DNA from: Macrostomum lignano
Taxonomy: Eukaryota
NCBI GenBank assembly: GCA_002269645.1
Contig: NIVC01001113.1
Coordinates: forward strand, 124,001-188,000
Length of the DNA stretch: 64,000 nucleotides
Direction of reading: 5' to 3'
The notes beneath the pieces were generated by a model. That model searched no databases. It was not told where the DNA came from and saw only the letters and a list, made by a program, of their open reading frames with translations. The position numbers and the translations under genes were made by a program. Numbering within the stretch: position 1 is the first letter of the stretch; every line of letters begins with the position of its first letter. Positions 7,201 through 39,352 of the stretch are shown here, one piece after another.

Positions 7201-10200
7201 CAGGGACTTGGCCGAATCGCCCTCAGTCAGGATCAGAACGCACTCGCCTTTGCCAGCATTGTTAGCGTGGTCGAGTTTCTCGTGGAACGTCTTCTTACTG
7301 GCTTTGGTTCGCTGATTCAGAGCTTTGTTGGTCTTGAAGTCGGCGTACTCAAGGACGCACCGGACAATACCGCAGTCTTCGGACAGAAGCTTCTTAAAGA
7401 ATTTGTCGTCCAATTCTGGCGCGCTGCCAAATTTCTTCGCTTGCAAAGTCATGAACTCTTTAGTTTGCGAGTCGAAGCTGGGATTCTCAATTAGACAGTT
7501 GCAGAAGATCCACAGGTGATTTTTCACAAATGCCGGCTTGATGGAGCCTTTCAGATTCTTCTTGTCGGCTTTGCACTTGCCGTCGATTGCGTCGACAAGG
7601 CGTTTGAGCAGCAGGTCGCAGACAAAGTCAACGTGACGGCCGCCTTTGGTGGTGGCGATTGAGTTCACAAAGCTGACCTGTGGAGAAGTTGAAGGTTTCA
7701 AATACAAGTGGATCTCCGATATATATCGAAATTTATTTTCTTATTTTAGACAATTTTTCACGAAAGTCCCGGGTTCGATTCTGTGAATTGTGAACTCGCG
7801 CGTGCATCTTAACGAAAAAACTCTGCATGGATGTACACTGCGTACCTGCGTGCCCAGTAGCCAGCAGCATAATTTACCGTGTAATAATAACATTCTAAAG
7901 GCGATAATTAATATCTAATTAAACAGGTGCAACCATCTTCCACTTGGCCAGAAGTAATTATTACCGGCCTAATTAGAGGCGCGCACCCACCTCACGCTCA
8001 GAGGTAATAATTACCCTAATTAAAGCGGCGCACTCACCTGACGCTCAGAGGTGATAATTACCCTAATTAAAGCGGCGCACTCACCTGACGCTCAGAGGTG
8101 ATAATTACCTAATTAAAGCGCGCACCACCTGACGCTCAGAGGTGATAATTACCTAATTAGAGTAGCGCAACCACCTAACACTCACGGGTAATAATTACCC
8201 TAATTAAAGTGGCGCAACCAACTCAAGCTTAGAGGTGATAATTAGCCAATTAATAGAGGCCTACCCACCTCATGCTCAGAGGTGATAATTACCCTAATTA
8301 AAGTAGCGTAGCGTACTCACCTCATCCTCGGGTGATAATTAGGGTGCCCCTAATCACAAATCACAAACTAAATTACATTAACTTAGTATTAATGCTCAAA
8401 ACTTTACCTGCTTAAATCCGTCGTTGCTCAGACAAACAGCCAGCTCCCATCGGCCACTTTTAATAATAGCCACCTCTTTGTCCTCCTTCTCTGTGAGGTA
8501 CAATCTGTAATAGTCCTTAAACGAAGTGACCGGCAGTTTCTCGCCGTTGAGAAACACTCGAACGCCGCTGCAAGTGCCGGCAATGTCGAAAGCCCGACGG
8601 CTGAACAAGGCGATCGTGTCGTCATCGAGTTCGGTCATGCCGAATTTCGTGAGGTCCGGCTTAAAGCTCACCTGCAAATATTGCGATATAACTGATTAAT
8701 TTGACTGACAACGGACATTGTTTAATACCTTCATAATTTGCGATCGATAGGAGATCATCAATAAACTACAGGAGATTAAGAGACTATCCGATGCAAACGG
8801 TGCCTTGGCTAAGAAGCGTCACTGAGTCACTTGCGTCGCTCCATAGTCGTTGCGGGTAACACAGGTAAAAATGGGAAAGAAGTGACTTTATAAGTCGCCT
8901 AAGAATCAGTTTGAGGCGTCTGCGGCCGTAGAGTCATATCTGGGTCGCGCTAGAGTCGCTGTAGAATCGCTGAGTGGCGTCTAAAGCGCATCTGCATCAC
9001 TTTATAAATTGGAATCAAATTTTGCATTTTTAAAACTCTATTTAGTCTACTTGTAGTTAGTAGAAAGTTAAGCGCCTGAAATTGAGTTTGAAGTCCCTTT
9101 TTAGCGACTCAACAGTCGCCTCTCCGTCGCATTACAGTCGTTTCAGTCGCCTTAAAAGTCACAAAATTCGCCCCAGCCTCGTTATAGATTCACTAGTGAG
9201 TTGTTTGCAATGATTCTTTAGTGATTATTATCACGGTATCGTTTTTAAACAGGCTACTAAAACTTTCAAGGGACTTTGAAGAGATTATCATGAGATTATG
9301 TGTGACTATTCAGTGAGATTATCGAAACATTAGTAAGAATTAGAATGGATTATTATCGAAACTTAAAAAATAGACTTTCAAATGAAACTTATTCAGATAT
9401 CTGGGACTTTGAAGAGAGATTATCCTGATATCTGTGAGACTTTGAAGGGAGATTATCCAGATATCTGTGAGACTGAAGAGAGATTATCCAGATATCTGTG
9501 AGACTTTGAAGAGAGATTATCCAGATATCTGTGAGACTTTGAAGGGAGATTATCCAGATATCTGTGAGACTGAAGGGAGATTATCCAGATACCTGTGAGA
9601 CTTTGAAGGGAGATTATCCAGATATCTGTGAGACTTTGAATGAAGATTAATCCAGATACATGTGAGAATTTGAACGGAGATTATCCAGAGAGCAGAAAAT
9701 GCTTATCAAAGGTCATAAATTTGTCAGGTGGATTAACCTACCTTAGTATAATCTTCGGCGGCATTTTTCATAATCTTAGCTTCGCCAGCTTTGCCCATAT
9801 TGTCAGTCCAAGTCTGTTGGAACCGTTTTCCGGACTCTTTGCACGAGGTCTCAACAGTAAATTGGCTACTGTAGACGTTGCACAGTTTCGCTCCGTAGCC
9901 GTTTCGACCTCCCGTAGTTTTCTTCTCGCTGTCATTAAAATTGCTAGACGTCAATAAGTGACCAAAGATTAGCGTTGGAACATAGAGCTTCTCTTTCTTG
10001 TGCTCAACTACTGGGATGCCTTTGCCATTGTTCCACACTTCGATGAGATTGTCCTCCTTGCTGATGGTGATGCGAATGCAGGACATGCCGGGATCGCGCT
10101 GTTTATTATCCGCCGCATTGACCAGCACTTCGTCGAAGATTTTATAGAGGCCAGGCACGAACGTGATCTCGCGTTCAATCATGCGTTTAGCGGTGGAATC

Positions 10201-10401
10201 GTAGACCCACATGTTCTGGCGGACACTTTCTACTGAGCCAATATAGGTGTCCGGCCGGAGCAATATGTGCTCCAGCTGCGTCTTCTTCTGGTAGATTTTT
10301 TCTACTGACACTCGCTGCTTGCCGCTGCCGCCACCAAACCGATTGGCTGCATCGCTAAGTGGCGAAGCCAGCGGGCCAAGATTGTCTGTTTCGCTGCTCA
10401 T
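1251..10401 (-). CDS. TOP2: DNA topoisomerase II (type IIA), 8 coding exons, about 1535 aa
   Basis: Exons assembled by hand with frame-consistent GT-AG ends: 10401-9742, 8671-8408, 7677-6886, 6217-5705, 5227-4938, 4425-3856, 3603-2913, 2078-1251 (4608 nt). Motifs: EHILLRPDTYIGS; GHKL ATPase DEVLVNAADN and GGRNGYGAKL; TOPRIM TEGDSA, PLKGK and IMTDQDQDGSHI; YYKGLGTS; DGLKPGQRK; catalytic AARYI; LINGADGIGTGWST; Lys/Asp-rich C-terminal tail. The exon 7 donor (GTTAAT) is the least certain junction. Confidence 0.97.
2170..2880. repeat. About 29-bp minisatellite (TTTTAAATGGGAGATTTCTGATTGGGGA-like) in TOP2 intron 7
   Basis: Tandem units fill most of the intron and create the spurious PNQKFPISK-type ORF tail. 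Confidence 0.92.
3660..3845. repeat. Degenerate inverted copies of the intron 7 minisatellite in TOP2 intron 6
   Basis: AAAATCCCCAATCAGAAATCTCCCC is the reverse complement of the intron 7 unit. Confidence 0.75.
4470..4805. repeat. 23-bp minisatellite (TAATAACCTTGTTGCTAGGGCGC)n in TOP2 intron 5
   Basis: Direct reading of tandem units. Confidence 0.92.
5258..5670. repeat. 22-bp minisatellite (CTACCTGTCTTAGTGTCTATAT)n in TOP2 intron 4
   Basis: Direct reading; on the sense strand each unit contains CAGGTAG. Confidence 0.92.
6290..6790. repeat. 23-bp minisatellite (GCGATTCTCAGGGTGGATTAGTG)n in TOP2 intron 3
   Basis: Direct reading of tandem units. Confidence 0.92.
7960..8345. repeat. About 47-bp minisatellite in TOP2 intron 2
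   Basis: Units such as CACCTGACGCTCAGAGGTGATAATTACCCTAATTAAAGCGGCGCACT; the sense strand contains CAGGTGAGT. Confidence 0.85.
9400..9690. repeat. About 33-bp minisatellite (GAGATTATCCAGATATCTGTGAGACTTTGAAGG)n in TOP2 intron 1
   Basis: Direct reading of tandem units. Confidence 0.88.
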
Positions 10402-18204: not shown

Positions 18205-19553
18205 CGAGGGGCATCCCAAAAGTCCGTTCAGTCACTGAATAAAAACGCAACAGTGCAACAGGAAAGTTTAAAAACTTCATAGGCCTTCAAAATAACTTCC
18301 ATTGGCCGCAATCACACGCTGCCAGCGCTCTGGTAGTTTCTTGACTCCGTCAGTAGCGCCAGAATCACACAGGTGTTGAAGCACCTGGACGATGATGCTG
18401 AAGAGTTCGTCCAGGCAGTAGTAGCGGTGGCCTCGTAGCTGATTTTTTAGCTTTGGAAAGAGATCGAAGTCACAAGGACTCAGGTCGGGAGAATAGGCGG
18501 GATGAGGTAGGACTTCCCAGCCGTAGTTTGCCAGCAGCTCCTTGACAATCCAACCAGTGTGGGGGCTTGCGTTGTCATGCAGCAATAGGGGTCCATTCGA
18601 AAGTGTCAGTGCTCGCTTCTTCTGGAGCGCTGGTCGAAGATGGTAAATAATAAAGCGTCTGTAATACTGATTTACAGTCTGTCCCTCAGGCACTCTGTGT
18701 ACAAGAACCATACCAAAGTAATCATAGCAGACGATGAGCATCATCTTCTTGGACCCCTTGCTGCGCCTCAGGACTTCTGGCCGGGAAGACTGTGCGGCAG
18801 AACGGTCGCGCTGCTGCCATTCAGAATTCTGCGACTTTAGATTCGGTTCATATGAGCAGGCCCACGTCTCATCTAAAGTCACAATTCTCTGAAGAAATTT
18901 CTCTCCCTCCTTCCGAAAGCGCTGCAGCAGCTGCTGGGCAACAGTTCTCCGACGATCCTTCTGTGCATCATCCAGGTGGTGAGGCACCCATCGAGCTGTG
19001 ACCTTCTGCAAGCCCAGATCTTCTGTTAAAATTCGGTGCACACTAGTAGATGGAATTCCAGTCAGTTCCTCCAGTTCTTCACAAGTCCACCGACGATCGA
19101 TTTCGAGGATGCCCTTCACCAGCTCAACGTTGGCATCTGATCGAGACTCCCTTGGCCGTCCTGATTGCTGGCCATCCTCGATGTCGAATTGCCCATCTCT
19201 GAAGCGCGTATACCAATTGTACACAGATCTCTCAGTAAAGGCACGGTCTTTGAATGCTTCAACAAGTTGCCGGTGAACTTGCGCAGCTTTTGTTCCTCGC
19301 AAAAATTCGGCTTTGATGTACAAGCGTTGCTCGATATTGTTAACGTCCTCCATCAGTTAATCAGATCGGCCAAGTTTAAAATCACTAGACTGGTTAATTT
19401 ATTATAACACTTCGAATACTCGATATATAAGCTCAAAATTTTATAAAGTTAAAGAGGGGTTGCTCTAGTAAATAACTGTGAGTGGTTGAGCTCTTTACTC
19501 GTCGTTTATGGTAAAAACGGCACGTACTGAACGGACTTTTGGGATGCCCCTCG
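18205..19553 (-). mobile_element. Full-length mariner (Tc1/mariner, DD34D) DNA transposon, 1349 bp
   Basis: Perfect 28-bp TIR CGAGGGGCATCCCAAAAGTCCGTTCAGT (18205-18232 and 19526-19553) flanked by TA on both sides. Confidence 0.96.
18277..19353 (-). CDS. Mariner transposase, 358 aa, uninterrupted
   Basis: N-terminal HTH domains, WVPH and YSPDL motifs, catalytic TLDETW, LHDNASPH and SPCDF with D-34-D spacing. Confidence 0.95.
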   Translation of the reverse strand: MEDVNNIEQRLYIKAEFLRGTKAAQVHRQLVEAFKDRAFTERSVYNWYTRFRDGQFDIEDGQQSGRPRESRSDANVELVKGILEIDRRWTCEELEELTGIPSTSVHRILTEDLGLQKVTARWVPHHLDDAQKDRRRTVAQQLLQRFRKEGEKFLQRIVTLDETWACSYEPNLKSQNSEWQQRDRSAAQSSRPEVLRRSKGSKKMMLIVCYDYFGMVLVHRVPEGQTVNQYYRRFIIYHLRPALQKKRALTLSNGPLLLHDNASPHTGWIVKELLANYGWEVLPHPAYSPDLSPCDFDLFPKLKNQLRGHRYYCLDELFSIIVQVLQHLCDSGATDGVKKLPERWQRVIAANGSYFEGL

Positions 19554-19609: not shown

Positions 19610-19950
19610 ATGGCTTCATCTGAGGTTTCTATGGCGCTTCACCTGGGGTTTTCATGGCGCTTCACTTGAGGTTTCCATGATGGCGCTTCACCTGCATGAG
19701 GTTTTCATGGCGCTTCACCTGCATGAGGTTTTCATGGCGCTTCACCTACATGAGGTTTTCATGGCGCTTCACCTGCATGAGGTTTCCATGGCGCTTCACC
19801 TGCATGAGGTTTCCATGGCGCTTCACCTGCATGAGGTTTCCATGGCGCTTCACCTGCATGAGGTTTTCATGGCGCTTCACCTGCATGAGGTTTCCATGGC
19901 TTTACCTGAGGTTTATATGGGATTATACCTAAGGTTTATATGGGATTATA
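19610..19950. repeat. 21-22-bp minisatellite (ACCTGCATGAGGTTTTCATGGCGCTTC / ACCTGAGGTTTCCATGG family), array 1
   Basis: Same family as the arrays at 27040-27535 and 27825-28620. Confidence 0.88.
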
Positions 19951-20142
19951 CCTGAGGTTTATATGGGGCCAAACGAATTGTGTTTCCGTGGCGCGATATA
20001 TACAAGAACCCGAGAGTCCTTAGGTTTTAGATATACCTGAGATTTGATTCGCTGCTAGCTATACTAAGTGATATATCCAATCATTTGATCATTCATGATA
20101 TTCTGCGCTATCTTTGGTGACAGCTTAGACAAGAATAGATAG

Positions 20143-21309: not shown

Positions 21310-23700
21310 CACAACATCTCCCCCCGATCACCAGCGGTCACCAGCTGTTGGATCTGGAACAGCTGTGCACCCCGAGAGACTTCCTCACTGGCGTCGCTGG
21401 TGATGGTGACGATCGTGTCCACGCTCGTGTGTCAATACCGATGGATTGCAGATTGCAGCCTTCAACCCCCGGAAAGCTTGCTCGCATTCGGTTGTCCACT
21501 CGTCCACTCGAACTCGGCGTCGCTCTTGAGCAGATGTCGATCAGAGGCAAATTGGGTTTGGGCACGAGGAAGTTGGCCGATCCCCAGGAACGCCTGCAGC
21601 TCCTTCTTCCTCCAGTCGCTTCAGCAGAGACTTGAGTCGGTGCTCAGTCTCCGTTGCTCGGTGAACAATGATGTCATCCAAGAAGTGCTCCATTCCGGGC
21701 AGGATACTACCAGGTCGTCCAGCATCCTCTCTGTAGGTTCCAGAAAATTTCGTCAATCTGTCATTTGGTAATTTAAAATGAAAGAAAAAATCGAGATCGA
21801 CTTACTTTGATGCCTTGCTGAAATAAGCCTACTGTGTCGAATAGGAACTTTACTTGTCGTTCAAGCGAAGTGTTTCTAAGAAAACCCACATACTTATAAC
21901 GTCAAAATAAAAAATTAAGAACTAAACGGGAAGTGTAAAATTAAAAGGAAAAAGCATAATTAATTTATAATGAATATTATATATGTAATCTGCAGATGAT
22001 CAAAACAATCTATTTAACACGGTTCCCATTAGTATTCGAATCAAGGAATACTCAAGTTGACTATTAAAGTGATTTACTAGAAACAATTAACTTTAAACAC
22101 AACAAGTGAAATCTCCTTTCGATTCTGACCTATTTTAGAAGTAAATTTGATTCAATTTTACTTTAAAATCACGCACAAATCTTCTTTGACGAAAAGTTTT
22201 TTGACGAAATGTCCGTCCACTCCTCCGGAAGGCCGCAGGCGCTGACGCTTGACCAACGGCACCTGGCGGTGTCGGTACAGGCCCTGCAAGGTACGTTATG
22301 AGTCGCATGATGACTCGTGCAGCCGCATTTGCCTGTAGCCCGCCATGAGGTCGATCTTGGAGAAGGCGCGGCCGCTGGCTGTCTTGATATTCGTCAAGAT
22401 CTCGCCCAACGGAGGCATCCCGTGCTGGTCAATGACGAGCGACTTGTGCACATCGATGCAGACTCGAATGTTGCCGTTCTTCTTGTTGGCGACCACCAGG
22501 TTGGAAATCCAGGGGCTGGAGTTCACTCGCTCGATGATGCCCGCTGCCTCCAGCTGGTCAAGCTCCTCGCCGATCTGTTGCTGCTTTGCTAGAGGCAGGT
22601 GGCACAGCGGCTGCTGTACTTTGCTTTGCAAAGTGTTGATCCTCGGCTGGTTTACCGCTCCTTTGCACAGCTCGATTGAGCCGTTGAAGACCGCTAAGAA
22701 TTCCTTTGCGATATCGACACTGGCAATTCCGGTATCGGCACCTGGAAGCTGCCCAGCTTTTCCACCAGGTCGCGGCCGATGAAGTTCTCGCCCGATCTCG
22801 TGATTTGGAAGACGTGTTGCAGCTGCCAACTCCGGTGCTGGATGTCTATCTGCTTGCCGACGTACAATCGTAGATGCACCGCCAAAGGTCTCAGTTGAAG
22901 GTCGCTAAGGCTTTTTGCCGTGAGGATGTTGAGCAGCTGGCCACCTTAGCACCGCAGTCGACCACCAAGCTATCGATCTTTCGAGCATTGCCCAGTCGCA
23001 GCTCGACTCGGATCTCGTCGTTACCATGCACCGAGTAGATTGTAACTGACTCCTCCGCGCCGCAACTGCAGAGCCTTGCTGCGGCAACATCAACTGAAAT
23101 GATTGAGCTTGCCGCAGTTTTTTTTCACTTTTGTCATGCCGCCGCGGGGGTCGTGACTCCGGCTGCATCGCTGACAGGGGCCGGCGGCAATTGATGCTGT
23201 CACTTCTGTAGCTTCTTTCTAGCCGGAGCGCCGCGGTGGCCTCGGGGCCCAGCATCATGCACAGCCTGGACGTTTCCCGATGAGCTGGCAGCCGCCATCG
23301 CTTTGCTGCCAGCCGCTGCCTCCCTAATAGCAGTCGCGATCACAATGGCCTAGCTAGTCCAAAGTCAACCTGGCAGCGTCCTCCGTCAGTAGACGCTCGC
23401 GAATCCGAGGGCTGCTGGTCTTCTGTGCCAGCTGGTCGCGAATCAACTCGTCACTCAGAGCTCCATAGTTGCAGGTGGCTGATGGCTCTTGCAGTGACAA
23501 AGTGACTAAGGTGACTGCGTCCTCTCCAGGCAACTGCTGTCGCTCCTGTTCACATCACGTTCACATTCGATGCATTTCGAGCCCTGGCGATCTGCTGCCC
23601 CTCGAAGAAGAGCAGGTGCAGCAGCAGGTTGCGGCACACCGTTGCAAGAGAGAGAACGTACTACTGCTTTTGAATACTCATCGCTGGTCTGCGACACTGT
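21310..23700 (-). mobile_element. Decayed Ty3/gypsy LTR retrotransposon (gag zinc knuckle, protease, RT N-terminus, 3-prime end)
   Basis: Broken zinc knuckle CQRCSRSH...NCGKLNHF; protease-like VVDCGA; RT motifs SPWISNLVVANKKNGNIRVCID and FSKIDLMAGYRQ (ORF 22296-22829); polypurine tract GGGGGGAGA followed by TGTTG near 21320; frameshifts, stops and internal deletions. Confidence 0.8.
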
Positions 23701-24659
23701 CGGGGTTTATTTTAGAAAATAAGCAGCCGTCGGAAGAGAAGGCCATAGGCGAACGTATGCTGGAGGAGACTCGATCTGTCCTATTCCAATCTGGACGAGC
23801 CCAATGTGTCGGAGAATGACGTCAACAACACTAAGATGTGGCTCAGGGTTAAGCTCGGTTTATATGTGCTTTATCTAATTTATCTAATACTCGATTTGGC
23901 GTTGTCTTTGTGATTCAATTGAAAAAATCTCAGCTGACCGCACTCTCAACTCTGAATCGTGAATACTGAACGTGGAATTATCAGACTCCGAGAAGTTAAG
24001 AAATTGAAGTACTGGAAGCAAAGAGTGAAAGTCGGCTATATCGAGAAGATTCGTCGACGGCTGCTCTGCATACAGAAGATTTTGCCATCAGCGAAAAGAG
24101 CTTCAAGCTGCATTGGATAGTGCATGCTGAGCAGACCAAGTTGCCGATCGGAAGGAACCGAGAACAGAGCCGCACAACGACCTGTTTGAGGGAGTTGCAC
24201 GTGAGTTGCTCTACAAAACTGCAAGTTTATTGTTTGTGTACAGGAACTGAGGCATCCCACAAGAGATCACTACCGACTGAGACCCAAAGTTGCTTCGTCT
24301 TCAAGGAGTCCGAGCTCTCTGTAGTTCTTAGGGAATTTTCCGGAGCAAAGTGTCTAAGACGTGTCAACAAAGAGAACTGGCGGAGTAGCATTCCACCCAG
24401 TCTGGAATAGTGCACCGTGTTCAGTGCTCAGTGCTTTAGAAACTCAATTGCATTTAATTCTGAAAGATCTTGTTAAACTTTACTGTGTATGCAAGAAAGA
24501 GTAAAATAGAAAATGCGGAGAAAACTCTTGAGAGTTGCCTGTTTGACTGATAGCTGTCATCAAACAAACAAATTCTGCATCATATTCATAGGCATGCAAG
24601 ACTGCAGTCTCTGCTCCGCTCTTCTCGCGTAAAAGCAGAAAAGTCAAACAACGTCGCTC

Positions 24660-24700
24660 CTTGGACCGGAAACACGTGCCAATCCGAAGCGCATAAATTC
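24660..24700 (+). promoter_or_regulatory. Putative core promoter of peptide gene copy A (CCGGAA, CACGTG, CCAAT, CATAAA)
   Basis: CCAAT at 24679-24683 and TATA-like CATAAA at 24692-24697, about 95 nt upstream of the ATG; CCGGAA, CCAAT and CATAAA are conserved in copy B, while the CACGTG hexamer there reads CACGTA. Confidence 0.45.
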
Positions 24701-24789
24701 GCAACTACCAGCTACTCAAGAATTCAATTTCAAATTCGACTTAATCTACACACAGATCCAAGACTCGACTCGACTGGACTCAAGCAATC

Positions 24790-24990
24790 ATGAAGTGGCA
24801 GCTCGCTCTCGGACTTTTGCTGTGCGCCGCCCTGGTCGTCGCCGTGCCCACCCAGGAGGAGAAGGCCATGGCCGAACGCGTGCTGGAGGAGACTCTGTCC
24901 AACATTGACGAGTCCAGCATGTCGAAGGAGAAGGCACTGGACCTGAAGAAGAAGATCTTCAGGGTTAGGGCCAGGATCCATATTGGTTAG
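24790..24990 (+). CDS. Secreted 66-aa prepropeptide, copy A (signal peptide, acidic spacer, KKK, IFRVRARIHI-Gly)
   Basis: Hydrophobic signal MKWQLALGLLLCAALVVA, GC-rich coding-like codon usage, ATCATGA start context, duplicated copy with only one amino-acid change. Confidence 0.8.
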   Translation: MKWQLALGLLLCAALVVAVPTQEEKAMAERVLEETLSNIDESSMSKEKALDLKKKIFRVRARIHIG

Positions 24991-26337
24991 ATCTGAGACT
25001 GGCAACTGACCGGACTCTGAACTGTGACTGTAAACCGTCCAAATCTCAATGTAGAGGGTTTAAATCTTCTAATATCTACCGATCAGTTTTGCCAAATATA
25101 TCAGCAGCAAAACAATATATCTTTGTCTTGTTTTTTCTGGAATACCGGACTGTATGTTGTGAATATCTCTTCATAATGAAGAAAGGAAGAATTTTGAACC
25201 AAAGGATTCAAAGGAAGAAATTTAGCAATCTGCCGTCCGTCAATTTTTTTTCGCAAACTAGACTGGTAAATTTTACGTATGCACACTTTTACAGTGCATT
25301 AATTCGCACCCGCCTACAACGCTGAGGCAGCTCAGCGGGAGACGCATCTGATTCGCATCGAACTACGAGAACCTAAAATATGAGCTTCGATTCCATGCGC
25401 AGCTTCTTTTTTGTTGCTCATAGACGAAAATCATCGGCAACGCCTGCCAGCAAGAGGTGTCGTGGTTCTTGAGACGGGCGGAGCCGTTTCACAGTGATCA
25501 GTCCCGTCATCTGATTCATACAGATGCTAGCTGTTCCATACAGATGTTATATACTTCACTTTCTGTTATTTATTGAACGTCTTCAAACTTTTTACATTCA
25601 TGTTATGCATGCAATTTATTCGGCTACACTTTACTCTGGACTGCAGCCTTGTACGTTTTGCCGTTTTTGTACTTATTTTGTGTTCTTTGTAGTATATTGT
25701 ACGTATAGCTAACGGTATGACTTTAGCGGCATATTGTGGCCATATTTTAATCATATACGTATATGAAACGTATATGAAACGTATTAAAATCAATTAATCA
25801 TTGATTTTAATTTTCATGATTACAAGCATTTCCACTCGATTTCTGGTGTGTAGCAGTTTTGTGAAAATCTGACTCCAGGAGATGAAACTGCAGGCAAGCT
25901 CCTACATGTAAATAAGCTAGAGATATCAAGAAGACTTATACGTAGAGTTGATCTCTAAGACTTTTTTCGCTTGAGTCGCCAGTTTTCTGTCCTTAGTATT
26001 GAGCAGTCCCTACCCAAATCTTTCTCATTTTGTCAACCTCACACACGCCAACGGACGTGACGTTTTACATGTATTACTTTAAGTAATAAATATCTACGCG
26101 GAGATGGGAACGCTCAGGTGAGATTCTATGAATAAAATATGTGTCAATGTTTTAATTTCTAATGTTTCATAAAGGAAAACAAGACGAAGCGTACAATGGG
26201 TTGCTGAAACAATGTTTTGCTGCTAATATATTTGGCAAAACTGGATCGGCAAATAGATATGGAAGAAGACCCTCTACATTGAGATTTGGGCGGTTTACAG
26301 TCACAGTTCAGAGTCCGGTCAGTTGCCAGTCTCAGAC

Positions 26338-26538
26338 CTAACCAATATGGATCCTGGCCCTAACCCTGAAGATCTTCTTCTTCAGGTCCAGTGCCTTCTC
26401 CTCCGACATGCTGGACTCGTCAATGTTGGACAGAGTCTCCTCCAGCACGCGTTCGGCCATGGCCTTCTCCTCCTGGGTGGGCACGGCGACGACCAGGGCG
26501 GCGCACAGCAAAAGTCCGAGAGCGAGCTGCCACTTCAT
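26338..26538 (-). CDS. Secreted 66-aa prepropeptide, copy B
   Basis: Identical to copy A except K46E in the acidic spacer; predicted mature peptide is unchanged. Confidence 0.8.
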   Translation of the reverse strand: MKWQLALGLLLCAALVVAVPTQEEKAMAERVLEETLSNIDESSMSEEKALDLKKKIFRVRARIHIG

Positions 26539-27039
26539 GATTGCTTGAGTCCAGTCGAGTCGAGTCTTGGATCTGTGTGTAGATTAAGTCGAATTTGAAA
26601 TTGAATTCTTGAGTAGCTGGTAGTTGCGAATTTATGCGCTTCGGATTGGTACGTGTTTCCGGTCCAAGGAGCGACGTTGTTTGACTTTTCTGCTTTTCCG
26701 TGAGAAGAGCGGAGCAGAGACTGCAGTCTTGCATGCCTATGAATATGATTCAGAATTTGTTTGTTTGATGACAGCTATCAGTCAAACAGGCAACTCTCAA
26801 GAGTTTTCTGCATGCAAGTGTATTCAATTCAGTGCGGTCTATTTGACTGCTCGCGTGCACAGTAAAGTTTAATAAGAACTTTCAGAAAATTCAGTGCAAT
26901 TCAGTTTCTAAAGCACTGAGCACTGATCACGGTGCACTATTAGAGACTCGCTGGAATGCTACTCCGCCTGCCCTTGTTGTTGACACTTCTCAGACACTTT
27001 ACTCTGGGAAACTCAGCTAGTCCTCCATGGATATTCCAT

Positions 27040-27535
27040 TGCTTTCCATTGAGGCTTCCATGGCTTTACCTGAGGTTTTCATGGCTTTACCTGAGGTTTC
27101 TATAGACATTTACCTGAGGTTTTCATGGCTCTTTACCTGAGGTTTCCATGGCCCTTTACCTGAGGCTTCCATGGCTTTACCTGAGGTTTCCATGGCTTTA
27201 CCTGAGGTTTCTATAGACCTTTACCTGAGGTTTTCATGGCTTTACCTGAGGTTTCTATAGACATTTACCTGAGGTTTTCATGGCTCTTTACCTGAGGTTT
27301 CCATGGCCCTTTACCTGAGGCTTCCATGGCTTTACCTGAGGTTTCCATGGCTTTTTACTTGAGGTTTTCATGGCCCTTTACCTGAGATTTACGTGGCGCT
27401 TTACCTGAGGTTTTCATGGCCCTTTACCTGAGGTTTACGTGGCGCTTTACCTGAGGTTTCCATGACCTTGACTGAAGTTTCCATAGCTTAACCTGAGATT
27501 TCCATGGCGCTTTGCCTGAGGTTTCCATGGGGCTA
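27040..27535. repeat. 21-22-bp minisatellite (ACCTGAGGTTTCCATGGCTTT)n, array 2
   Basis: Direct reading; inverted relative to array 3. Confidence 0.92.
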
Positions 27536-27584
27536 TACCTGAGCGTTGCACAGCGCTAGCTGATTTCATAGAACATTACACGCC

Positions 27585-27720: not shown

Positions 27721-27824
27721 ATTTTCGTGCACACAAGCGTACCAGGGAAAATTCTTCAAAGGAATGAAACATGTCCATAATTTTTATCGGAATAAGGCCG
27801 ATTGTGAATAGGGCCTCAGGTAAA

Positions 27825-28620
27825 GGGCCATGGAAACCTCAGGTAAAGGGCCATGGAAACCTCAGGTAAAGGGCCATGGAAACCTCAGGTAAAGGGCCAT
27901 GGAAACCTCAGGTAAAGGGCCATGGAAACCTCAGGTAAAGGGCCATGGAAACCTCAGGTAAAGGGCCATGGAAACCTCAGGTAAAGGGCCATGGAAACCT
28001 CAGGTAAAGGGCCATGGAAACCTCAGGTAAAGGGCCATGGAAACCTCAGGTAAAGGGCCATGGAAACCTCAGGTAAAGGGCCATGGAAACCTCAGGTAAA
28101 GGGCCATGGAAACCTCAGGTAAAGGGCCACGTAAACCTCAGGTAAAGGGCCATGAAAACCTCAGGTAAAGGGCCATGAAAACCTCAGGTAAAGGGCCACG
28201 TAAACCTCAGGTAAAGGGCCACGTAAACCTCAGGTAAAGGGCCATGGAAACCTCAGGTAAAGGGCCATGGAAGCCTCAGGTAAAGAGAAATGGAAACCTC
28301 AGGTAAAGAGAAATGGAAACCTCAGGTAAAGAGAAATGGAAACCTCAGGTAAAGAGAAATGGAAACCTCAGGTAAAGAGAAATGGAAACCTCAGGTAAAG
28401 GGCCATGGAAACCTCAGGTAAAGAAAAATGGAAACCTCAGGTAAAGGGCCATGAAAAATTCAGGTAAAAAGCCATGGAAACCTTAGGTAAAGGGCCATGG
28501 AAACCTCAGGTAAAGGGCCATGGAAACTTCAGGTAAAAATCCATGGAAACTTCAGGTAAAAATCCATGGAAACTTCAGGTAAAAATCCATGGAAACCTCA
28601 GGTAAGGCCATAGAAACTCA
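27825..28620. repeat. 22-bp minisatellite (GGAAACCTCAGGTAAAGGGCCAT-like)n, array 3
   Basis: Reverse complement of array 2; the first part is highly homogeneous. Confidence 0.94.
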
Positions 28621-29519
28621 AGTATAGCATTTCTTGACAAACACATTGACTCATTGAAAAATTTACACACCTCATTTATCTCAGAGATAGCAAAAATCTG
28701 TCTATAATTCGTTTACTACTTTCATATCTACAGATAGACCTATCTGACTGATTTTATACCCCTACCCCTGAGGACATACAGAGCTGATTGGATGGATGGC
28801 TAAAAGCAAAAAGGAGATTTTTCAAAACCATATAAGCCACCGGTATATGTCTGGTTTATACTATTCATGCAATAGATTTATTCATCATTTGTCGTATCAA
28901 CAGTCGATGTTTATCTAAGCTGCCGGATTAGCCTAATACATCAAGTTCGGCGCCAAAAATGTTGACGTATCGGCTAATTGCAAAGCAACATTTGTCTGGA
29001 AAGTTCTTTAGAGTCAGATTATGAATTATGACTATGTGTTAGATTGAATTGAGAGATTTCATGCTAACCACGGACTAATCATCGCACCTCATCATCTAAT
29101 TATCACATCTCATCATCTAATTATCGCACCTCATTATCTAATAATTATATATATTTTACAGTATTAGAATCAGCTGTGAAGGTTTTTAAAGACGCTTATA
29201 CGAGTAGATAGAGCAAGGACTTCTAGACTAACAGGACGTAAAACTCAAAGATCGTGCAATTTTTTGGAGGCCACGATTTCCTGGAAAAAATACACTGCGA
29301 AGATAGGAAAAAATCTGTTTTTCGTCACAAAATCTGTGATTGTATTTGATCTGGGGCAGTGAAGACTACCATTCTTTTAATTTAACATGCACAACATGTT
29401 ACTCTATTATATTTTCATATAGCTGTGTAATGAAGTTTTAATTTTCATATTGTTTTCACTTTATTTCATAAGCCCAAAGTTGCAAACTCACAAGTTGTCT
29501 AGAAGTCCTTGAGATAGAG

Positions 29520-35765: not shown

Positions 35766-36935
35766 GGCAGACAGACGGACAGACAGAAAACAGAGAAAAG
35801 AGAGAAGGCAGAAAAGAGCAGAGAAGCGACACAAGCCTAGAGCGTGAGGGATCGCTACTTTGAAATATTCAAGAAGTTGAGAGCCAGAGTTTGCGAACCC
35901 CTGCTCTAATGCCAAACTGCACTTTATAAAACTGGATCTTCCGGATCCCCCATCCTGCAGCGCAGACGACTTCACCACGGGCTACATGCAGAGCAAGGCG
36001 ATGGTGGACTGCAACGGCACAGTGTTTTGGCCGCCCCCGGCAAAGCTACGATCGACCTGCAAAATCGATATCACGTATTTTCCGTTTGACGATCAGGTGT
36101 GCACAATGAAATTTGGCTCCTGGACCTACGATGGCTTTCAAGTGAATATAACTAAAAAGTGAGTTGAGCTTCTAGTTTCGAGCTCATGGGTTTTCAAGTT
36201 TTTGAATCTTCTAACTTGTGAATCTTCGAACTTGTGAATCTTCGAACTTGTGAATCTTCGAACTTGTGAATCGACGAACTTGTGAATCTTCGAACTTGTG
36301 AATCTTCGAACTTGTGAATCTTCTAACTTGTGAATCTTCTAACTTGTGAATCTTCGAACTTGTGAATCTTCGAACTTGTGAATCTTCGAACTTGTGAATC
36401 TTCGAACTTGTGAATCTTCGAACTTGTGAATCTTCGAGCTTGTGAAGCTTCGAACCTGTGAAGGCTCGAACTTGTGAAGCTTCGAGCTTGTGAAGCTTCG
36501 AACCTGTGAAGGCTCGAACTTGTGAAGCTTCGAGCTTGTGAAGCTTCGAACCTGTGAAGGCTCGAACTTGTGAAGCTATAGCCCTTCACGCATTTCGTCG
36601 AATCTCATGCAATATCTGGTTGGAATTTTGACGTTTAATTTTTAATTTATTGTTTTCAAACACCACGCAGACGAGAGGAGGTCGATTTCGAGAACTACGT
36701 TCAGAGCGGCGAGTGGAATCTCATACGGGTTGACGTTGAAAGACAAGAGGTCAGCAGTTGCTTACAGTTTCAAAACCAACTAACATGCACGTCAAGTATC
36801 ATTTTTAACTTTTTAGCAGCCAACTGAAAAAGTTCTTAACTTTGCCTACCAAAGACACAAAGGCAGACAACAAAGACAGACAAACAAACAGACAGACAGA
36901 CGACAGACAGACGACAGACAGACAGATACTAAGAC

Positions 36936-37007
<72 letters not shown>

Positions 37008-37075
37008 CGACAGGCAGGCAGGCAGGCAGGCAGACAGACAGGCAGGCAGGCAGGCAGACAGACAGGCAGACAGGC

Positions 37076-37108
<33 letters not shown>

Positions 37109-37186
37109 GGCAGACAGACAGGCAGGCAGGCAGGCAGGCAGGCAGACAGACAGGCAGGCAGGCAGGCAGACAGACAGACGGGCAAG

Positions 37187-37217
<31 letters not shown>

Positions 37218-39352
37218 ACAGACAGGCAGACAGGCAGGCAGGCAGGCAGGCAGACAGACAGGCAGGCAGACAGACAGGCAGACAGGCAGGCAGGCAGACA
37301 GGCAGGCAGACAGACAGACAGGCAGACAGGCAGGCAGGCAGGCAGACAGACAGGCAGGCAGGCAGGCAGACAGACAGACAGGCAGGCAGGCAGGCAGGCA
37401 GGCAGCAAGACAGGCAGGCAGGCAGGCAGGCAGACAGACAGGCAGGCAGGCAGACAGACAGACAGGCAGGCAGGCAGGCAGACAGACAGACAGGCAGGCA
37501 GACAGGCAGGCAGGCAGGCAGGCAGGCAGACAGACAGGCAGGCAGGCAGGCAGGCAGACAGACAGGCAGGCAGGCAGACAGACAGGCAAACAGGCAGGCA
37601 GACAGACAGGCAGACAGGCAGGCAGGCAGGCAGGCAGACAGTCAGACAGGCAGGCAGGCAGGCAGACAGGCAGACAGACAGGCAGGCAGACAGACAGGCA
37701 GGCAGACAGACAGGCAGACAGGCAGGCAGGCAGGCAGGCAGACAGACAGGCAGGCAGACAGACAGGCAGACAGGCAGGCAGGCAGGCAGGCAGGCAGACA
37801 GACAGTCAGACACAGAAAGTTCAAACCTGTACAATCAATTCAAATCCCGCAGACAGTCTATCCAATCAGCACAGTGCCATATCCGGACATCAAATTTCAT
37901 ATCGTTATTCAACGCAGAACGCTCTACTATCTGTTTAATATCATATTTCCATGCCTGTGGCTAACTGTGCTCAGCTTGCTCAGCTTCTGGTTGCCGCCAG
38001 ATTCTGGGGAGAAAATTACATTGGGCATCACTGTGCTGCTAGCCTTCTCAGTGTTCATGCTGCTTATTGCCGAGAATATGCCTGCGACTAGCGAGTTCGT
38101 GCCTCTCATTGGTAAGTGGCAAGGATCGCTGTGGGGGTAGGGGTGATCTGGAGGAGGGGTGCTGTGGGGGAAGGGTGCGTTGGGGGAATGCTGTGGGAGG
38201 AATGGGTGCTGTGGTGGGAAGGGGTGCTGTGGGGGGAAGGGGTGCTGTGGGGGAAGTGGTGCTGTGGGGGGAAGGGGTGCTGTGGGGGGAAGGGTGCTTT
38301 GGGGGGGGATGCTGTGGGGGGGAAGGGGTGCTGTGGGGGAAGGGGTGTTGTGGGGGAGGGGTGCTTTTGGGGGAAGGGGTGCTGTGGGGGAAGGGGTGCA
38401 GTTGTGGGGGGAAGGGGTGTTGTGGGGGCAAGGGTGCTGCGGGGGGAAGGGGTGCTGTGGGGGAAGGGGTGCTGTGGGGGAAGGGGTGTTGTGGGGGAAG
38501 GGGTGTTGTGGGGGCAAGGGTGCTGTGGGGGAATGGGTGCTGTGGGGGCAAGGGTGCTGTGGGGGGAAGGGGTGCTGTGGGGAAGGGGTGCTGTGGGGGC
38601 AAGGGTGCTGTGGGGGAAGGGGTGGTGTAAGGGGGAAGGGGTGCTGTGGGGGATTGGGTGCTCTAGGGAAAAAAGGGGTGCCGTTAGGGGGGGGGGAGGG
38701 GTGCACATGTGATTAACAGACGTGTTAACACTTTCTGCGAGCTTTTTGATATAGCAGATATGTACCTCATGCTACTTTACAATTGTACGGCACTAATGAT
38801 AGCTCCTCTGTACGCATTGCAGGAATCTACCTAACCGTCACAATGTCCACCACATCGCTGTCTATAGTCCTGACCGTGTTCGTGCTCCACCTGCACCACA
38901 TCGGCCCGAATGACAAGCCGGTGCCTCGCTGGCTGCGCCGGTTTCTATTCAAGCGCCTGGCGCCACTGCTCTGCATGACCTCAGTGGCGCGCTATCAGCG
39001 CAAGGCGCGTCGCAAGCGTCGAGAGTTGCGCCAACTCGACGATTCAGATCAGCCTGCAGTTGATGACATCACTGACGAGGCGGAAGACGAGTTAGAGACA
39101 GCGACGTGCACCACCACAGCGTCGACATTCAGGCAGCAGCATCAATTTCGACAGTCCATCCGTTTGGATCGGCATATCCGGCGACTGATGCGACAGCAAC
39201 TCGACGATGAAGCGGCCCAGCTGTTGATCAGCGACTGGCGCACAGTCGCCTACGTCATGGACCGGCTGCTATTCTGGCTGTTCTTAACTGCCGCGTTCAC
39301 GTCAACTCTGATCATACTGGTTGTCATGCCGCTGTTTAAGAAAGTTCTTTGA
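30108..39352 (+). CDS. Nicotinic acetylcholine receptor-family (Cys-loop) subunit, cation-selective type, no loop C vicinal cysteines; 7 exons, about 475 aa
   Basis: Exons 30108-30314, 31933-31977 (conserved 45 nt), 33229-33338 (conserved 110 nt), 35961-36158, 36671-36749, 37853-38111, 38823-39352 (1428 nt, in frame). Signal peptide; WLPDIVLYN; Cys-loop [15 protein letters not shown]; GSWTYDG; RRTLYY; [13 protein letters not shown]; M4 DRLLFWLF. Confidence 0.95.
30480..31445. repeat. 20-bp minisatellite (GACAGGGAACACAGTGGAGT)n in nAChR intron 1
   Basis: About 48 units; source of three long spurious minus-strand ORFs. Confidence 0.95.
32020..32792. repeat. (TTAG)n microsatellite in nAChR intron 2
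   Basis: About 770 bp of TTAG with CTAG variants. Confidence 0.97.
33330..33925 (+). repeat. 20-bp minisatellite (AACAGGTAAACTGGAGTGAG)n starting at the exon 3 donor
   Basis: The first unit is the genuine exon-intron junction TATAACAG|GTAAACTGGAGTGAG. Confidence 0.93.
34245..34490. repeat. 20-bp minisatellite (AGACAGGGCCGCCCACCAAG)n
   Basis: About 12 units. Confidence 0.92.
34533..34843. mobile_element. 311-bp MITE with about 105-bp inverted arms and an apparent 6-bp TSD
   Basis: Ends CCACGGAGGAAAG and CTTTCCTCCATGG; GTCTAA on both flanks. Confidence 0.75.
35365..35790. repeat. (GACA)n microsatellite
   Basis: Direct reading. Confidence 0.96.
36200..36580. repeat. 16-17-bp minisatellite (GAATCTTCGAACTTGT)n in nAChR intron 4
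   Basis: Direct reading. Confidence 0.92.
36875..37810. repeat. Compound (GACA)n/(GGCA)n microsatellite in nAChR intron 5
   Basis: Direct reading; it fuses a spurious [11 protein letters not shown] to real exon 6. Confidence 0.96.
38125..38700 (+). repeat. G-rich about 17-bp minisatellite (GGGGAAGGGGTGCTGTG)n in nAChR intron 6
   Basis: Dense G4-G7 tracts on the transcribed strand. Confidence 0.92.

Follow-up and report, generated by a model that had tools for sequence, protein, structure and literature searches.

The locus raises the question of what is specified by two short, near-identical open reading frames (ORFs) that lie in opposite orientations within the window, i.e., the whole 64,000-nucleotide stretch of Macrostomum lignano DNA that was analysed. 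The original prediction described two intronless ORFs of 66 aa, and both were found where it had placed them, at 24790-24990 on the plus strand and 26338-26538 on the minus strand; each is uninterrupted and has the C-terminal end IFRVRARIHI-G-stop. The coding sequences of 201 nt are one nucleotide apart, codon 46 being Lys in copy A and Glu in copy B (K46E). The two copies lie in the arms of an inverted duplication, which share 92% identity across 803 columns in a blastn self-comparison and include a 541-nt core (24519-25059) at 99%. The two ORFs are best explained as a recently duplicated, head-to-head pair of expressed M. lignano genes of the cluster Mlig010060. The pair and its surroundings comprise the following features:

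About 23677-23880, plus strand: degenerate third copy, a pseudogene relic without signal peptide, with stops and a frameshift (tblastn and sequence)
24336-25114, plus strand: arm A of the inverted duplication, carrying copy A (blastn self-comparison against 27011-26213)
24790-24990, plus strand: copy A CDS, 66 aa and stop, single exon; the same ORF is found in L003 and L004 of GCA_002269645.1, where it is transcript-annotated
25115-26212, no strand: unique spacer separating the arms, without family homology
26213-27011, minus strand: arm B of the inverted duplication, carrying copy B (blastn self-comparison)
26338-26538, minus strand: copy B CDS, 66 aa and stop, K46E relative to copy A; predicted mature peptide at 26344-26373

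The relic at 23677-23880, which was absent from the original listing, has remnants readable as EEKAIGERMLEET ... SNLDEPNVSENDVNNTKMWLRVKLGLYV. It contains a 41-nt repeat (D5, 88% identity) and is also present in L003 and L004.

The product had been proposed to be a prepropeptide, and the parts of copy A are as follows:

24790-24843, plus strand: predicted signal peptide, residues 1-18 (MKWQLALGLLLCAALVVA), with a hydrophobic core, V at -3 and A at -1; dN/dS 0.27
24844-24945, plus strand: acidic propiece, residues 19-52 (34 residues, net charge -5), with 9 D/E versus 4 K/R
24946-24954, plus strand: KKK, putative convertase site, of which the final two Lys are invariant
24955-24984, plus strand: predicted mature peptide IFRVRARIHI, of the pattern ΦΦ(BΦ)4, where Φ is hydrophobic and B is Arg or His; class kept through at least 35 substitutions
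24985-24990, plus strand: Gly codon (putative amide donor) and stop, GGT-TAR in 20 of 20 intact close paralogues

Hydrophobicity is high over residues 5-19 (mean Kyte-Doolittle 2.98), and V at -3 together with A at -1 fits, by a heuristic rule, a predicted cleavage after A18, in agreement with the signal peptide of about 18 residues first suggested. The excess of acidic residues reported for the spacer of copy A also holds, with KKK following directly. The propiece is helical in prediction, at low confidence, and the AlphaFold2 model of the precursor is all-helix with a pLDDT of 65 and, at this low confidence, bears neither way on the β-strand idea. The hydrophobic moment of IFRVRARIHI has its maximum at 180 degrees, i.e., at β-strand periodicity, which is consistent with the amphipathic strand that had been predicted.

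In GenBank, the window ORFs are annotated as 'hypothetical protein BOX15_Mlig010060', and the annotation is transcript-based: the models of this assembly were built from RNA-seq and transcriptome data with repeat-overlapping transcripts excluded (PMC5730564). Together with the intact family copies described below, this establishes that the two window genes are real and transcribed. An exact-sequence look-up of the 66-aa product gave no match because the deposited models carry extensions derived from the 5'UTR. The original prediction recognised no known family, and database and literature searches bear this out. A Pfam match to Lock_Gag1-like was rejected as chance (17.7 bits against a cut-off of 27), a PDB search returned no relative, and an Rfam search of the window gave no match. 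Homology to dermaseptin, cathelicidin and melittin was sought in Pfam, PDB and profile searches (for melittin, by alignment) and none was found. Database names are 'hypothetical protein' or 'uncharacterized protein' throughout, barring two domain-based UniRef labels, one on a model fused to a neighbouring receptor gene and the other a probable misnomer. A literature search with six peptide strings and 12 gene ids of the family found them in no paper, a search on M. lignano with antimicrobial peptide or neuropeptide returned nothing relevant, and the supplements of Grudniewska 2018, Mouton 2018 and a 2025 gut paper contained no match.

The search for paralogues by tblastn that had been proposed was carried out together with profile searches. 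The results comprise 20 intact copies (18 distinct CDS) from 10 other M. lignano loci and the window, and beyond them a wider superfamily; 3 decayed copies were also found among the loci. All close paralogues share the signal peptide, followed by an acidic propiece, an invariant KK, a ΦΦ(BΦ)n peptide with n=2-4, and a terminal Gly-stop. Across the 18 distinct CDS, dN/dS is 0.27 in the signal peptide, 0.88 in the propiece and 0.69 in the mature part, the last from an alignment which is ambiguous owing to dyad indels, while dS climbs from 0.11 to 0.56 along the gene. The signal peptide is thus the best-conserved part of the gene, and the mature part, with the highest dN and dS, the least conserved. 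There is no sign of positive selection, dN/dS being below 1 in all three regions. The KKK codons show neither a synonymous nor a non-synonymous difference among the 18 distinct CDS; K54 and K55 are invariant in the close-family alignment A1, and K55 also in the superfamily alignment A3.

The peptide itself is conserved in another sense. Over at least 35 nucleotide substitutions, the hydrophobic or basic class is kept at all 10 peptide positions (rough P ~1e-10, computed ignoring shared ancestry). The Arg codons in this region include AGG, AGA, CGT and CGC, and His derives from CGY. Differences in peptide length are 6-nt (dyad) indels which leave the alternation intact. Hence, the strict hydrophobic/basic alternation that was first noticed in two sequences survives throughout the close family. 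Other alternating sequences are IFRVRVRI, FVRVRVRL, FIHIHF, GFHVHFH, and FHLHLP. As judged from these alignments, selection acts on the physico-chemical class of the peptide residues and not on their identity.

Nucleotide homology among all paralogous loci begins at about 24518-24620 and ends near the stop codon, at about 24930-24973; it spans promoter, signal peptide and propiece, and stops at the peptide. Upstream of the pair, the following features were mapped:

24518-24789, plus strand: conserved upstream region of copy A (promoter and 5'UTR), by nucleotide homology to paralogous loci and alignment A2
24668-24698, plus strand: invariant promoter block GGAAACACGTGCCAATCCGAAGCGCATAAAT (ACGTG/E-box, CCAAT, TATA-like), by motif search and alignment A2
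26630-26660, minus strand: promoter block of copy B, with G-to-A in the otherwise invariant ACGTG (plus-strand T at 26650; alignment A2)

The block (GGAAACACGTG) sits inside the upstream region 24518-24789, and the common core is only about 30 nt long. It precedes every intact copy, the version of copy B carrying the one change, and a motif search returned the block of copy A as the single match in the window, along with 24 matches in 12 loci, where 0 were expected by chance. In 15 of 15 matches checked against a mapped start codon it lies 92-125 nt upstream of the family ATG.

A sceptical reading would take the ORFs as non-functional, i.e., as chance frames, pseudogenes, or fragments borne by repeats or transposons. 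The neighbourhood is indeed repeat-rich, with 23-bp minisatellites and a mariner-type transposase nearby; the antisense frames are largely open, three copies have decayed, and the promoter block of copy B is mutated. Nevertheless, all 18 distinct CDS have an open sense frame, whereas the two antisense frames that are otherwise mostly open are interrupted in 2 and 5 of the 18. The synonymous turnover of Arg codons, the invariant core promoter, and an annotation which is based on transcripts and excludes repeats argue in the same direction. Moreover, the copies occupy different genomic contexts, without common flanks beyond the gene, so that the intact copies resemble neither transposon fragments nor pseudogenes: they keep the frame and the promoter block and share no repeat flanks. 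We regard the non-functional reading as extremely unlikely. One antisense ORF of 91 aa (24730-25005) was considered as a candidate gene and rejected, being broken in some paralogues; it stays open only because the sense codons avoid TTA, CTA, and TCA.

The finding is wider than the pair first described. Profile searches revealed about 70 gene models that form a superfamily, in which signal peptide, propiece and KK are held in common and the cationic tails are hypervariable. The signal peptide is nearly invariant superfamily-wide (alignment A3), while the tails differ radically, including Arg-rich sequences, Pro/Arg repeats (P0037), a Cys pair, and His-only 6-7-mers; they are 6-37 residues long and unrelated in sequence, one peptide per precursor. 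Some are rich in Tyr and Lys or Tyr and Arg, e.g., AVYKPNYYKD and the YRIYRHLPFP that closes P0053. The basic site and the terminal Gly, both of which the original prediction had read from two copies, extend through this larger set: among 30 tabulated members, 27 have KK before the peptide and 3 a single K, and 27 end in G, GK or GKR, which are canonical amidation signals. When searched with a profile, 1.84 billion representatives yielded M. lignano proteins and one Logan contig only, with no homologue outside Macrostomum-type sequences and none in other flatworms. On the sequences available, the superfamily is lineage-restricted and undescribed.

With the boundary between propiece and peptide set by the aligned KK site, the propiece charge (-4 to -16) offsets the tail charge (0 to +16), the Spearman coefficient being -0.80 for 30 members and -0.88 for 20 subtypes, computed ignoring shared ancestry. 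This relationship bears on the idea that the acidic N-terminal part is the functional product and that the cationic tail serves only for sorting or neutralisation, or is discarded. Superfamily-wide, conservation is higher in the propiece motif EALSN.DES.MSEE than in the tail, and the propiece is predicted to be helical, as such an idea would have it. In the close family, however, the propiece evolves near-neutrally (dN/dS 0.88), the tail retains its strict pattern and amidation signals, and the propiece charge tracks that of the tail and is not fixed. A functional acidic part is thus very unlikely.

We consider it highly probable that the window genes encode the precursor of a processed, secreted cationic peptide. 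The best reading of the superfamily as a whole is a new family of cationic peptides that are processed, amidated and active on membranes, for which we see the chances as evenly balanced; that the role is antimicrobial or defensive is a proposition at, or marginally short of, the same balance. Each precursor would probably release one short, positively charged, amidated peptide of the antimicrobial type, and the route to it, from signal cleavage to membrane activity, is one that we infer. The signal peptide (residues 1-18) would direct the precursor into the secretory pathway, and the 34-residue anionic propiece would neutralise the cationic tail in transport. Cleavage at the invariant KK, which is less common as a convertase site than KR or RR, would be carried out by a subtilisin-type convertase, and a peptidylglycine alpha-amidating enzyme would transform the terminal Gly to an amide. 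The product would be IFRVRARIHI-NH2, possibly with one or more extra N-terminal Lys. Flatworms are known to have PC2 and amidated peptides confirmed by mass spectrometry (PMC2953531). In the predicted β conformation, all the Arg and His residues would lie on one face of the strand and all the aliphatic residues on the other. The peptide would most likely bind and disrupt anionic membranes, with microbes as the presumed target, i.e., act as a host-defence effector, and it might be deployed in or around the germline as the candidate tissue.

The combination of a constant signal peptide and propiece with unrelated cationic tails is typical of antimicrobial and toxin families, such as the frog dermaseptin and temporin precursors and the cathelicidins. 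The frog precursors have a conserved signal and acidic propiece, a dibasic site, a hypervariable cationic C-terminal peptide ending in G or GK, and large multigene families; temporins are amides of 10-14 residues. The flatworm precursors share with those of frog skin this prepro layout, the hypervariable tail, the amidation signals and the multigene organisation. They are not related to them in sequence, have KK in place of KR, give products down to 6-10 residues, and have amphipathicity of the β type (i, i+2) as predicted, not helical; furthermore, the frog products come from skin glands, whereas the one localised flatworm paralogue was assigned to the gonads. Prepromelittin of the honeybee, which has about 70 aa and consists of a signal, an anionic propiece, a cationic peptide and a Gly-stop as amide donor, is almost identical to the window precursor in size and layout. 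No similarity was detectable in an alignment with the melittin precursor, and melittin is a 26-residue helix whose propiece is removed stepwise by dipeptidyl peptidase and not at a dibasic site. The anionic propiece offsets the charge of the cationic peptide, as it does in the precursors of alpha-defensins and cathelicidins; cathelicidins likewise attach a conserved pro-region to mature peptides that are unrelated to one another, some of them Pro/Arg-rich. The flatworm precursors, however, are much smaller and unrelated in sequence, with neither a cathelin nor a defensin fold, and the window peptides have no cysteines. Hydra periculin and arminin are also taxon-restricted, secreted, and composed of an anionic N-terminal and a cationic C-terminal part. 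Periculin, which is larger and cysteine-rich, is expressed in the female germline and protects the embryo, which parallels the gonad datum, although there is no homology to periculin or arminin.

Several features sit less easily with defence. Peptides of 6-10 residues and charge +3 to +5 are near the lower limit of length for disrupting membranes, the His-only members are without any Arg or Lys, and the gonad datum is as compatible with a reproductive role as with an immune one, if not more so. That datum concerns the probe RNA815_1838.3 (Ramm et al. 2019), whose in situ hybridisation (ISH) is labelled 'gonads' in supplementary file 16 of Brand et al. 2020. The primers of this probe have exact matches in L012, at 5977 and 6320, and the amplicon of 364 bp covers the superfamily gene that starts at L012:6001 (88 aa). 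The promoter block is common to the window genes, this gene and the Logan contig, which makes co-expression plausible. The peptides might thus be reproductive, i.e., made in testes and ovaries and acting in or upon the gametes, the eggs or the mate, possibly as cationic components of granules or eggshell, as sperm-egg or partner-manipulating peptides, or as protectors of the egg; in the case of gamete or embryo protection, this and the antimicrobial reading coincide in part. Reproduction-related genes of the genus typically diverge fast and belong to expanded families (PMC7336406), and the superfamily may be linked to the orthogroups OG0000199 and OG0000223, of about 30 genes, labelled 'gonads' in Brand 2020. 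The tails rich in Tyr with Lys or Arg also point this way. Against it, the gene examined is the only localisation datum and belongs to a distant subfamily (about 50% identity), the complete ISH table of Brand et al. 2020 has no window-type gene id, and the promoter core that links the two is only about 30 nt. A reproductive role is therefore possible, but rather unlikely.

The window precursor also has the attributes of a prohormone in the operational definition of Collins et al. 2010 (PMC2953531), namely a signal sequence (heuristic), a basic site flanking the peptide and a length below 200 aa (here 66 aa). The peptides are short with a terminal Gly, and a role as neuropeptides, hormones or pheromones acting on receptors has to be weighed. 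Small secreted precursors with a basic site, Gly and some -RF or -RL ends are shared with flatworm prohormones, i.e., those of FLPs and the myomodulin-like mpl-1 and mpl-2 (AVRLMRLa). Two paralogue types, IFRVHVRF-G and FVRVHVRF-G, would end in -RFamide, and the -RLamide ends recall the flatworm peptide AVRLMRLa. The window peptides, in contrast, end in -HI-G and so lack the C-terminal -RFamide hallmark of FLPs. Conservation is lowest in the mature peptide, where neuropeptide genes usually have it highest; the tails of the roughly 70 gene models are unrelated over 6-37 residues, at a single peptide copy per precursor; and no orthologue occurs in any other flatworm among the 1.84 billion representatives. 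In addition, the charge compensation suggests that the cationic product is harmful and has to be neutralised. A signalling function is accordingly improbable.

Chemists have independently reached the same alternating design rule for β-sheet antimicrobials, such as (IRIK)2-NH2 and (IRVK)n-NH2, and for zinc-binding catalytic amyloids of the Ac-IHIHIQI-NH2 and LHLHLRL types. The window subfamily shares with these designs the strict alternation of aliphatic residues with Arg/Lys or His, lengths of 6-12 residues and a C-terminal amide, which is predicted here. Unlike the synthetic peptides, the flatworm sequences are gene-encoded. It is conceivable, if a long shot, that the alternating mini-peptides are natural counterparts of the designed ones, acting as self-assembled cross-β structures and not as soluble ligands. 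The Arg type (IFRVRARIHI-NH2, FVRVRVRL-NH2) would then form Arg-ladder fibrils, and the His-only FIHIHF-NH2, GFHVHFH-NH2 and FHLHLP-NH2 would be metal-binding, possibly catalytic His/Zn amyloids. Secretory granules of the germline or egg envelope would store or release such assemblies, and the anionic propiece would serve as an anti-aggregation chaperone.

To our knowledge, gene-encoded antimicrobial or effector peptides are almost unknown in flatworms, and the window subfamily provides the first set from nature of sequences, 6-10 residues long and with predicted amidation, in which aliphatic residues alternate strictly with Arg (or His). The superfamily combines one conserved export cassette and an invariant 30-nt promoter block with wildly different cationic tails. 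In M. lignano, a transgenic and RNAi-amenable model, its approximately 70 genes would offer a tractable system for the origin and diversification of new secreted peptide families. They bear also on the defence of the flatworm body and germline against microbes, and on the compact core promoter driving a whole family. Alternating amides of 6-10 residues are short and therefore cheap to synthesise and test; for IFRVRARIHI-NH2, the calculated monoisotopic mass is 1278.815, with [M+2H]2+ at 640.415 and [M+3H]3+ at 427.279.

The two 66-aa open reading frames that had been read from the sequence alone, each ending IFRVRARIHI-G-stop, were confirmed in the window. They lie head-to-head inside an inverted duplication whose arms are 92% identical overall (99% in a 541-nt core) and separated by about 1.1 kb, with a decayed third copy upstream:

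~23677-23880, plus strand: decayed third family copy, without signal peptide, with stops and a frameshift
24336-25114 and 26213-27011: arms of the inverted duplication
24790-24990, plus strand: copy A, 66 aa, uninterrupted
26338-26538, minus strand: copy B, 66 aa, uninterrupted

The translation of both copies is MKWQLALGLLLCAALVVA / VPTQEEKAMAERVLEETLSNIDESSMS(K/E)EKALDL / KKK / IFRVRARIHI / G-stop, with a single difference in 201 nt (K46E). The hydrophobic core, V at -3 and A at -1 are compatible with signal cleavage after A18 (heuristic, not SignalP), in agreement with the signal peptide of about 18 residues first proposed, and the earlier residue count for the copy A propiece (9 D/E, 4 K/R; net charge -5) is correct. 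The decayed copy retains the tail remnant MWLRVKLGLYV; two loci outside the window (L003 and L004) carry the same decayed copy at 8936-9127.

The protein search hit no species but Macrostomum lignano, and nearly every entry bears the name 'hypothetical protein BOX15_Mlig...'. The window ORFs correspond to cluster Mlig010060, and identical ORFs occur on two contigs of GCA_002269645.1. The GenBank annotation of this assembly was based on RNA-seq and a transcriptome, with repeat-overlapping transcripts removed (PMC5730564). A gene model in it therefore implies a transcript, the reads of which may map to several paralogues, and annotation of the window-type genes is thus transcript-based. Redundancy in the hidden-polyploid assembly inflates the family's copy number. 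The neighbours fit an ordinary, repeat-rich chromosomal region with many minisatellites:

1251-10401, minus strand: topoisomerase II gene, introns full of 20-47-bp minisatellite arrays (e.g., 2176-2839, 4491-4806, 5260-5671, 6293-6755, 7968-8303, 9389-9689)
18277-19353, minus strand: intact mariner/Mos1-type transposase ORF (358 aa; HTH_48, DDE_3 and Transposase_1 matches)
19621-19967, 27034-27543 (plus) and 27814-28624 (inverted): 23-27-bp minisatellite (TGAGGTTTCCATGGC..TTTACC) on either side of the gene pair, its large inverted array immediately downstream of arm B
36842-39352 (plus) and 47071-49468 (minus): nicotinic-receptor-like channel exons and phosphatase-like gene

The candidate family proved to have paralogues. 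Twenty intact copies (18 distinct CDS) were found in 10 other loci and the window, together with three decayed copies, arranged in tandem or inverted clusters of 2-5 genes spaced about 3 kb apart. All intact copies have in common the signal peptide, the acidic propiece and an invariant AAG-AAG (KK), and all terminate in GGT-TAR; one subtype has an 8-codon insertion ahead of the final Gly (…RVRVGSRRRSRSG). The peptide following KK is ΦΦ(BΦ)n, where n is 2-4, Φ stands for I, F, V, L, W or A, and B for R or H, as in FIHIHF, IFRVRVRI, FVRVRVRL, FVRVHVRF, IFRVRARIHI and WLRVRARVRI. Length changes in 6-nt dyads, Arg is encoded by AGG, AGA, CGT and CGC, and His is derived from CGY. The strict hydrophobic/basic alternation first noticed in the window thus extends across the close family: in a KK-anchored alignment, residue class is kept at 10/10 peptide positions through at least 35 substitutions, the chance of which under random mutation is roughly P ~1e-10 by a statistic that ignores shared ancestry. 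The hydrophobic moment peaks at 180 degrees in 12/12 peptides. Antisense frames, often open because of codon usage, were rejected as genes; they are disrupted in some paralogues, but the sense frame never is.

Pooled Nei-Gojobori estimates by region
Signal peptide: dN/dS 0.27, dS 0.11
Propiece: dN/dS 0.88, dS 0.23
Mature peptide: dN/dS 0.69, dS 0.56

By these estimates the export signal is under strong conservation and the tail is the fastest-changing part; its changes nevertheless stay within a physico-chemical template.

A superfamily in which one signal peptide, propiece and KK are combined with very different cationic tails emerged both from a profile search, covering 1.84 billion representative proteins, and from a second search that was word-indexed and used a diverse alignment. 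The tails include WRRRRRFRWRKAIRVAGKVAKAVL, FRIRIRWGRVARNVLRLL-GK, WLLRRIRIRWRRVLRVASRVYRIYRYLPI-GK, WRIKSACKIFRRLLHLARKCYAKK-G (with a Cys pair), LFFRRRRRRHYFVYHSRRRYYRRRYHRRHHVHIVAYH-G, the Pro/Arg repeat FLRVRLPRVRMPRVRLPRVRLPRLRVRFRWSKK, AVYKPNYYKD, and the His-only GFHVHFH-G and FHLHLP-GK. The superfamily comprises about 70 deposited models, a sum of cluster members inflated by assembly redundancy, and a G, GK or GKR terminus is present in 27/30 distinct members. The propiece carries a net charge of -4 to -16 that counterbalances a tail charge of 0 to +16; the Spearman coefficients, which ignore phylogeny, are -0.80 (n=30) and -0.88 (20 subtypes). Neither search matched any other flatworm or animal protein; beyond the M. 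lignano assembly they yielded one member, a 929-nt genomic Logan contig (L011; SRA run SRR31628392) that encodes a Pro/Arg repeat tail and also has the conserved promoter block. The AVYKPNYYKD proteins (P0040 and P0052; M. lignano Mlig020534 and Mlig023778) lack the Gly end, and their Tyr/Lys/Pro decapeptide tail recalls adhesive or eggshell motifs of the DOPA type.

Homology among loci starts some 170-270 nt before the ATG and ends at the peptide. The shared promoter block, GGAAA(C/A)ACGTG(C/G)C-N8-14-GCATAAAT, is located 92-125 nt upstream of the ATG in 15/15 copies compared with mapped start codons, and has one match in the window and 24 in 12 loci (0 expected by chance).

26630-26660, minus strand: copy B promoter block, with a G-to-A change (plus-strand T at 26650)

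The copy B block reads GGAAACACGTACC versus the otherwise invariant GGAAACACGTGCC, the sole intact copy so altered among those examined; copy B may therefore be the weaker of the two genes.

The original statement that no known family was recognizable stands: nothing in Pfam passed the cut-off, no relative turned up in the PDB, and prepromelittin, compared directly, showed no similarity. Frog-skin peptide precursors, prepromelittin and cathelicidins are alike in architecture, but the family belongs to none of them, homology having been looked for and not found. By sequence, then, the family appears new and its architecture of a known type, and the searchable literature yielded no description of its genes. 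The predicted products of the window subfamily share the alternating aliphatic/cationic rule with designed beta-sheet antimicrobials and designed His/Zn catalytic amyloids; to our knowledge, no natural gene-encoded family of this sort has been described. The His-only subfamilies (FIHIHF-G, GFHVHFH-G, FHLHLP-GK; L001 13065-13253; L006 2898-3086 and 6732-6920; proteins P0044, P0045 and P0059), with peptides free of Arg and Lys, closely resemble designed zinc-binding catalytic-amyloid heptapeptides.

In the proposed processing, the signal peptide would be removed after A18, a convertase would cut at KK, and the residue preceding Gly would be amidated, giving IFRVRARIHI-NH2, perhaps K-extended, which would be amphipathic as a beta-strand. 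KK is an unusual convertase site. Flatworms have PC2, and their amidated peptides have been confirmed by MS (PMC2953531). The AlphaFold model predicted for the precursor is uninformative.

An export cassette that is conserved, cationic tails that are hypervariable, propieces matched to them in charge and restriction to one lineage together make up the known signature of host-defence or toxin peptide families. Neuropeptide genes show the reverse, with conservation in the mature peptide. The reading we favour is therefore a membrane-active peptide of defence, perhaps deployed at or near the germline. Its chief rival is a role in reproduction; signalling is a weaker one. The one expression datum comes from gonads. 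In Brand et al. 2020 (supplementary file 16; PMC7336406), in situ probe RNA815_1838.3 of Ramm et al. 2019 appears under 'gonads', a category distinct there from 'testes' and 'ovaries', and is assigned to Mlig001477.g4. The two probe primers match exactly in L012, a superfamily locus, and delimit 364 bp, the listed probe length; the stretch spans a superfamily gene encoding …KK-WLGRRRRVRIRWRKVLRLVYRIYRHMPL-GK. Although only about 50% identical to the window genes, this paralogue has the promoter block in common with them and suggests, with moderate strength, that the window genes too may be expressed in gonads. In supplementary file 8 of Brand et al. 2020, orthogroups OG0000199 and OG0000223 (each with about 30 genes, drawn from M. 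hystrix, M. lignano and M. spirale) carry the in situ label 'gonads', and OG0000223 is up-regulated in both social contrasts (PMC7336406); either could be the peptide superfamily.

L012 contains at least five family copies and fragments, and GenBank model Mlig001477g4 (P0053, 139 aa; L012 6001-33330), which joins the start of one family gene to a second copy 27 kb away, is mis-joined. In UniRef models taken from an older annotation (P0017 and P0015), the window peptide gene is fused with the adjoining receptor gene (1047 aa, 'Neur_chan_LBD domain-containing') and a 73-aa family member is labelled 'SERPIN domain-containing protein'; each of these names looks like an artefact of annotation. Long (AGAC)n and 17-bp repeats, which give lengthy spurious ORFs, break up the receptor-like exons (Neur_chan_memb match), and the phosphatase-like gene, without a Pfam match, contains the CX5R-type motif HCVSGWDRTP.
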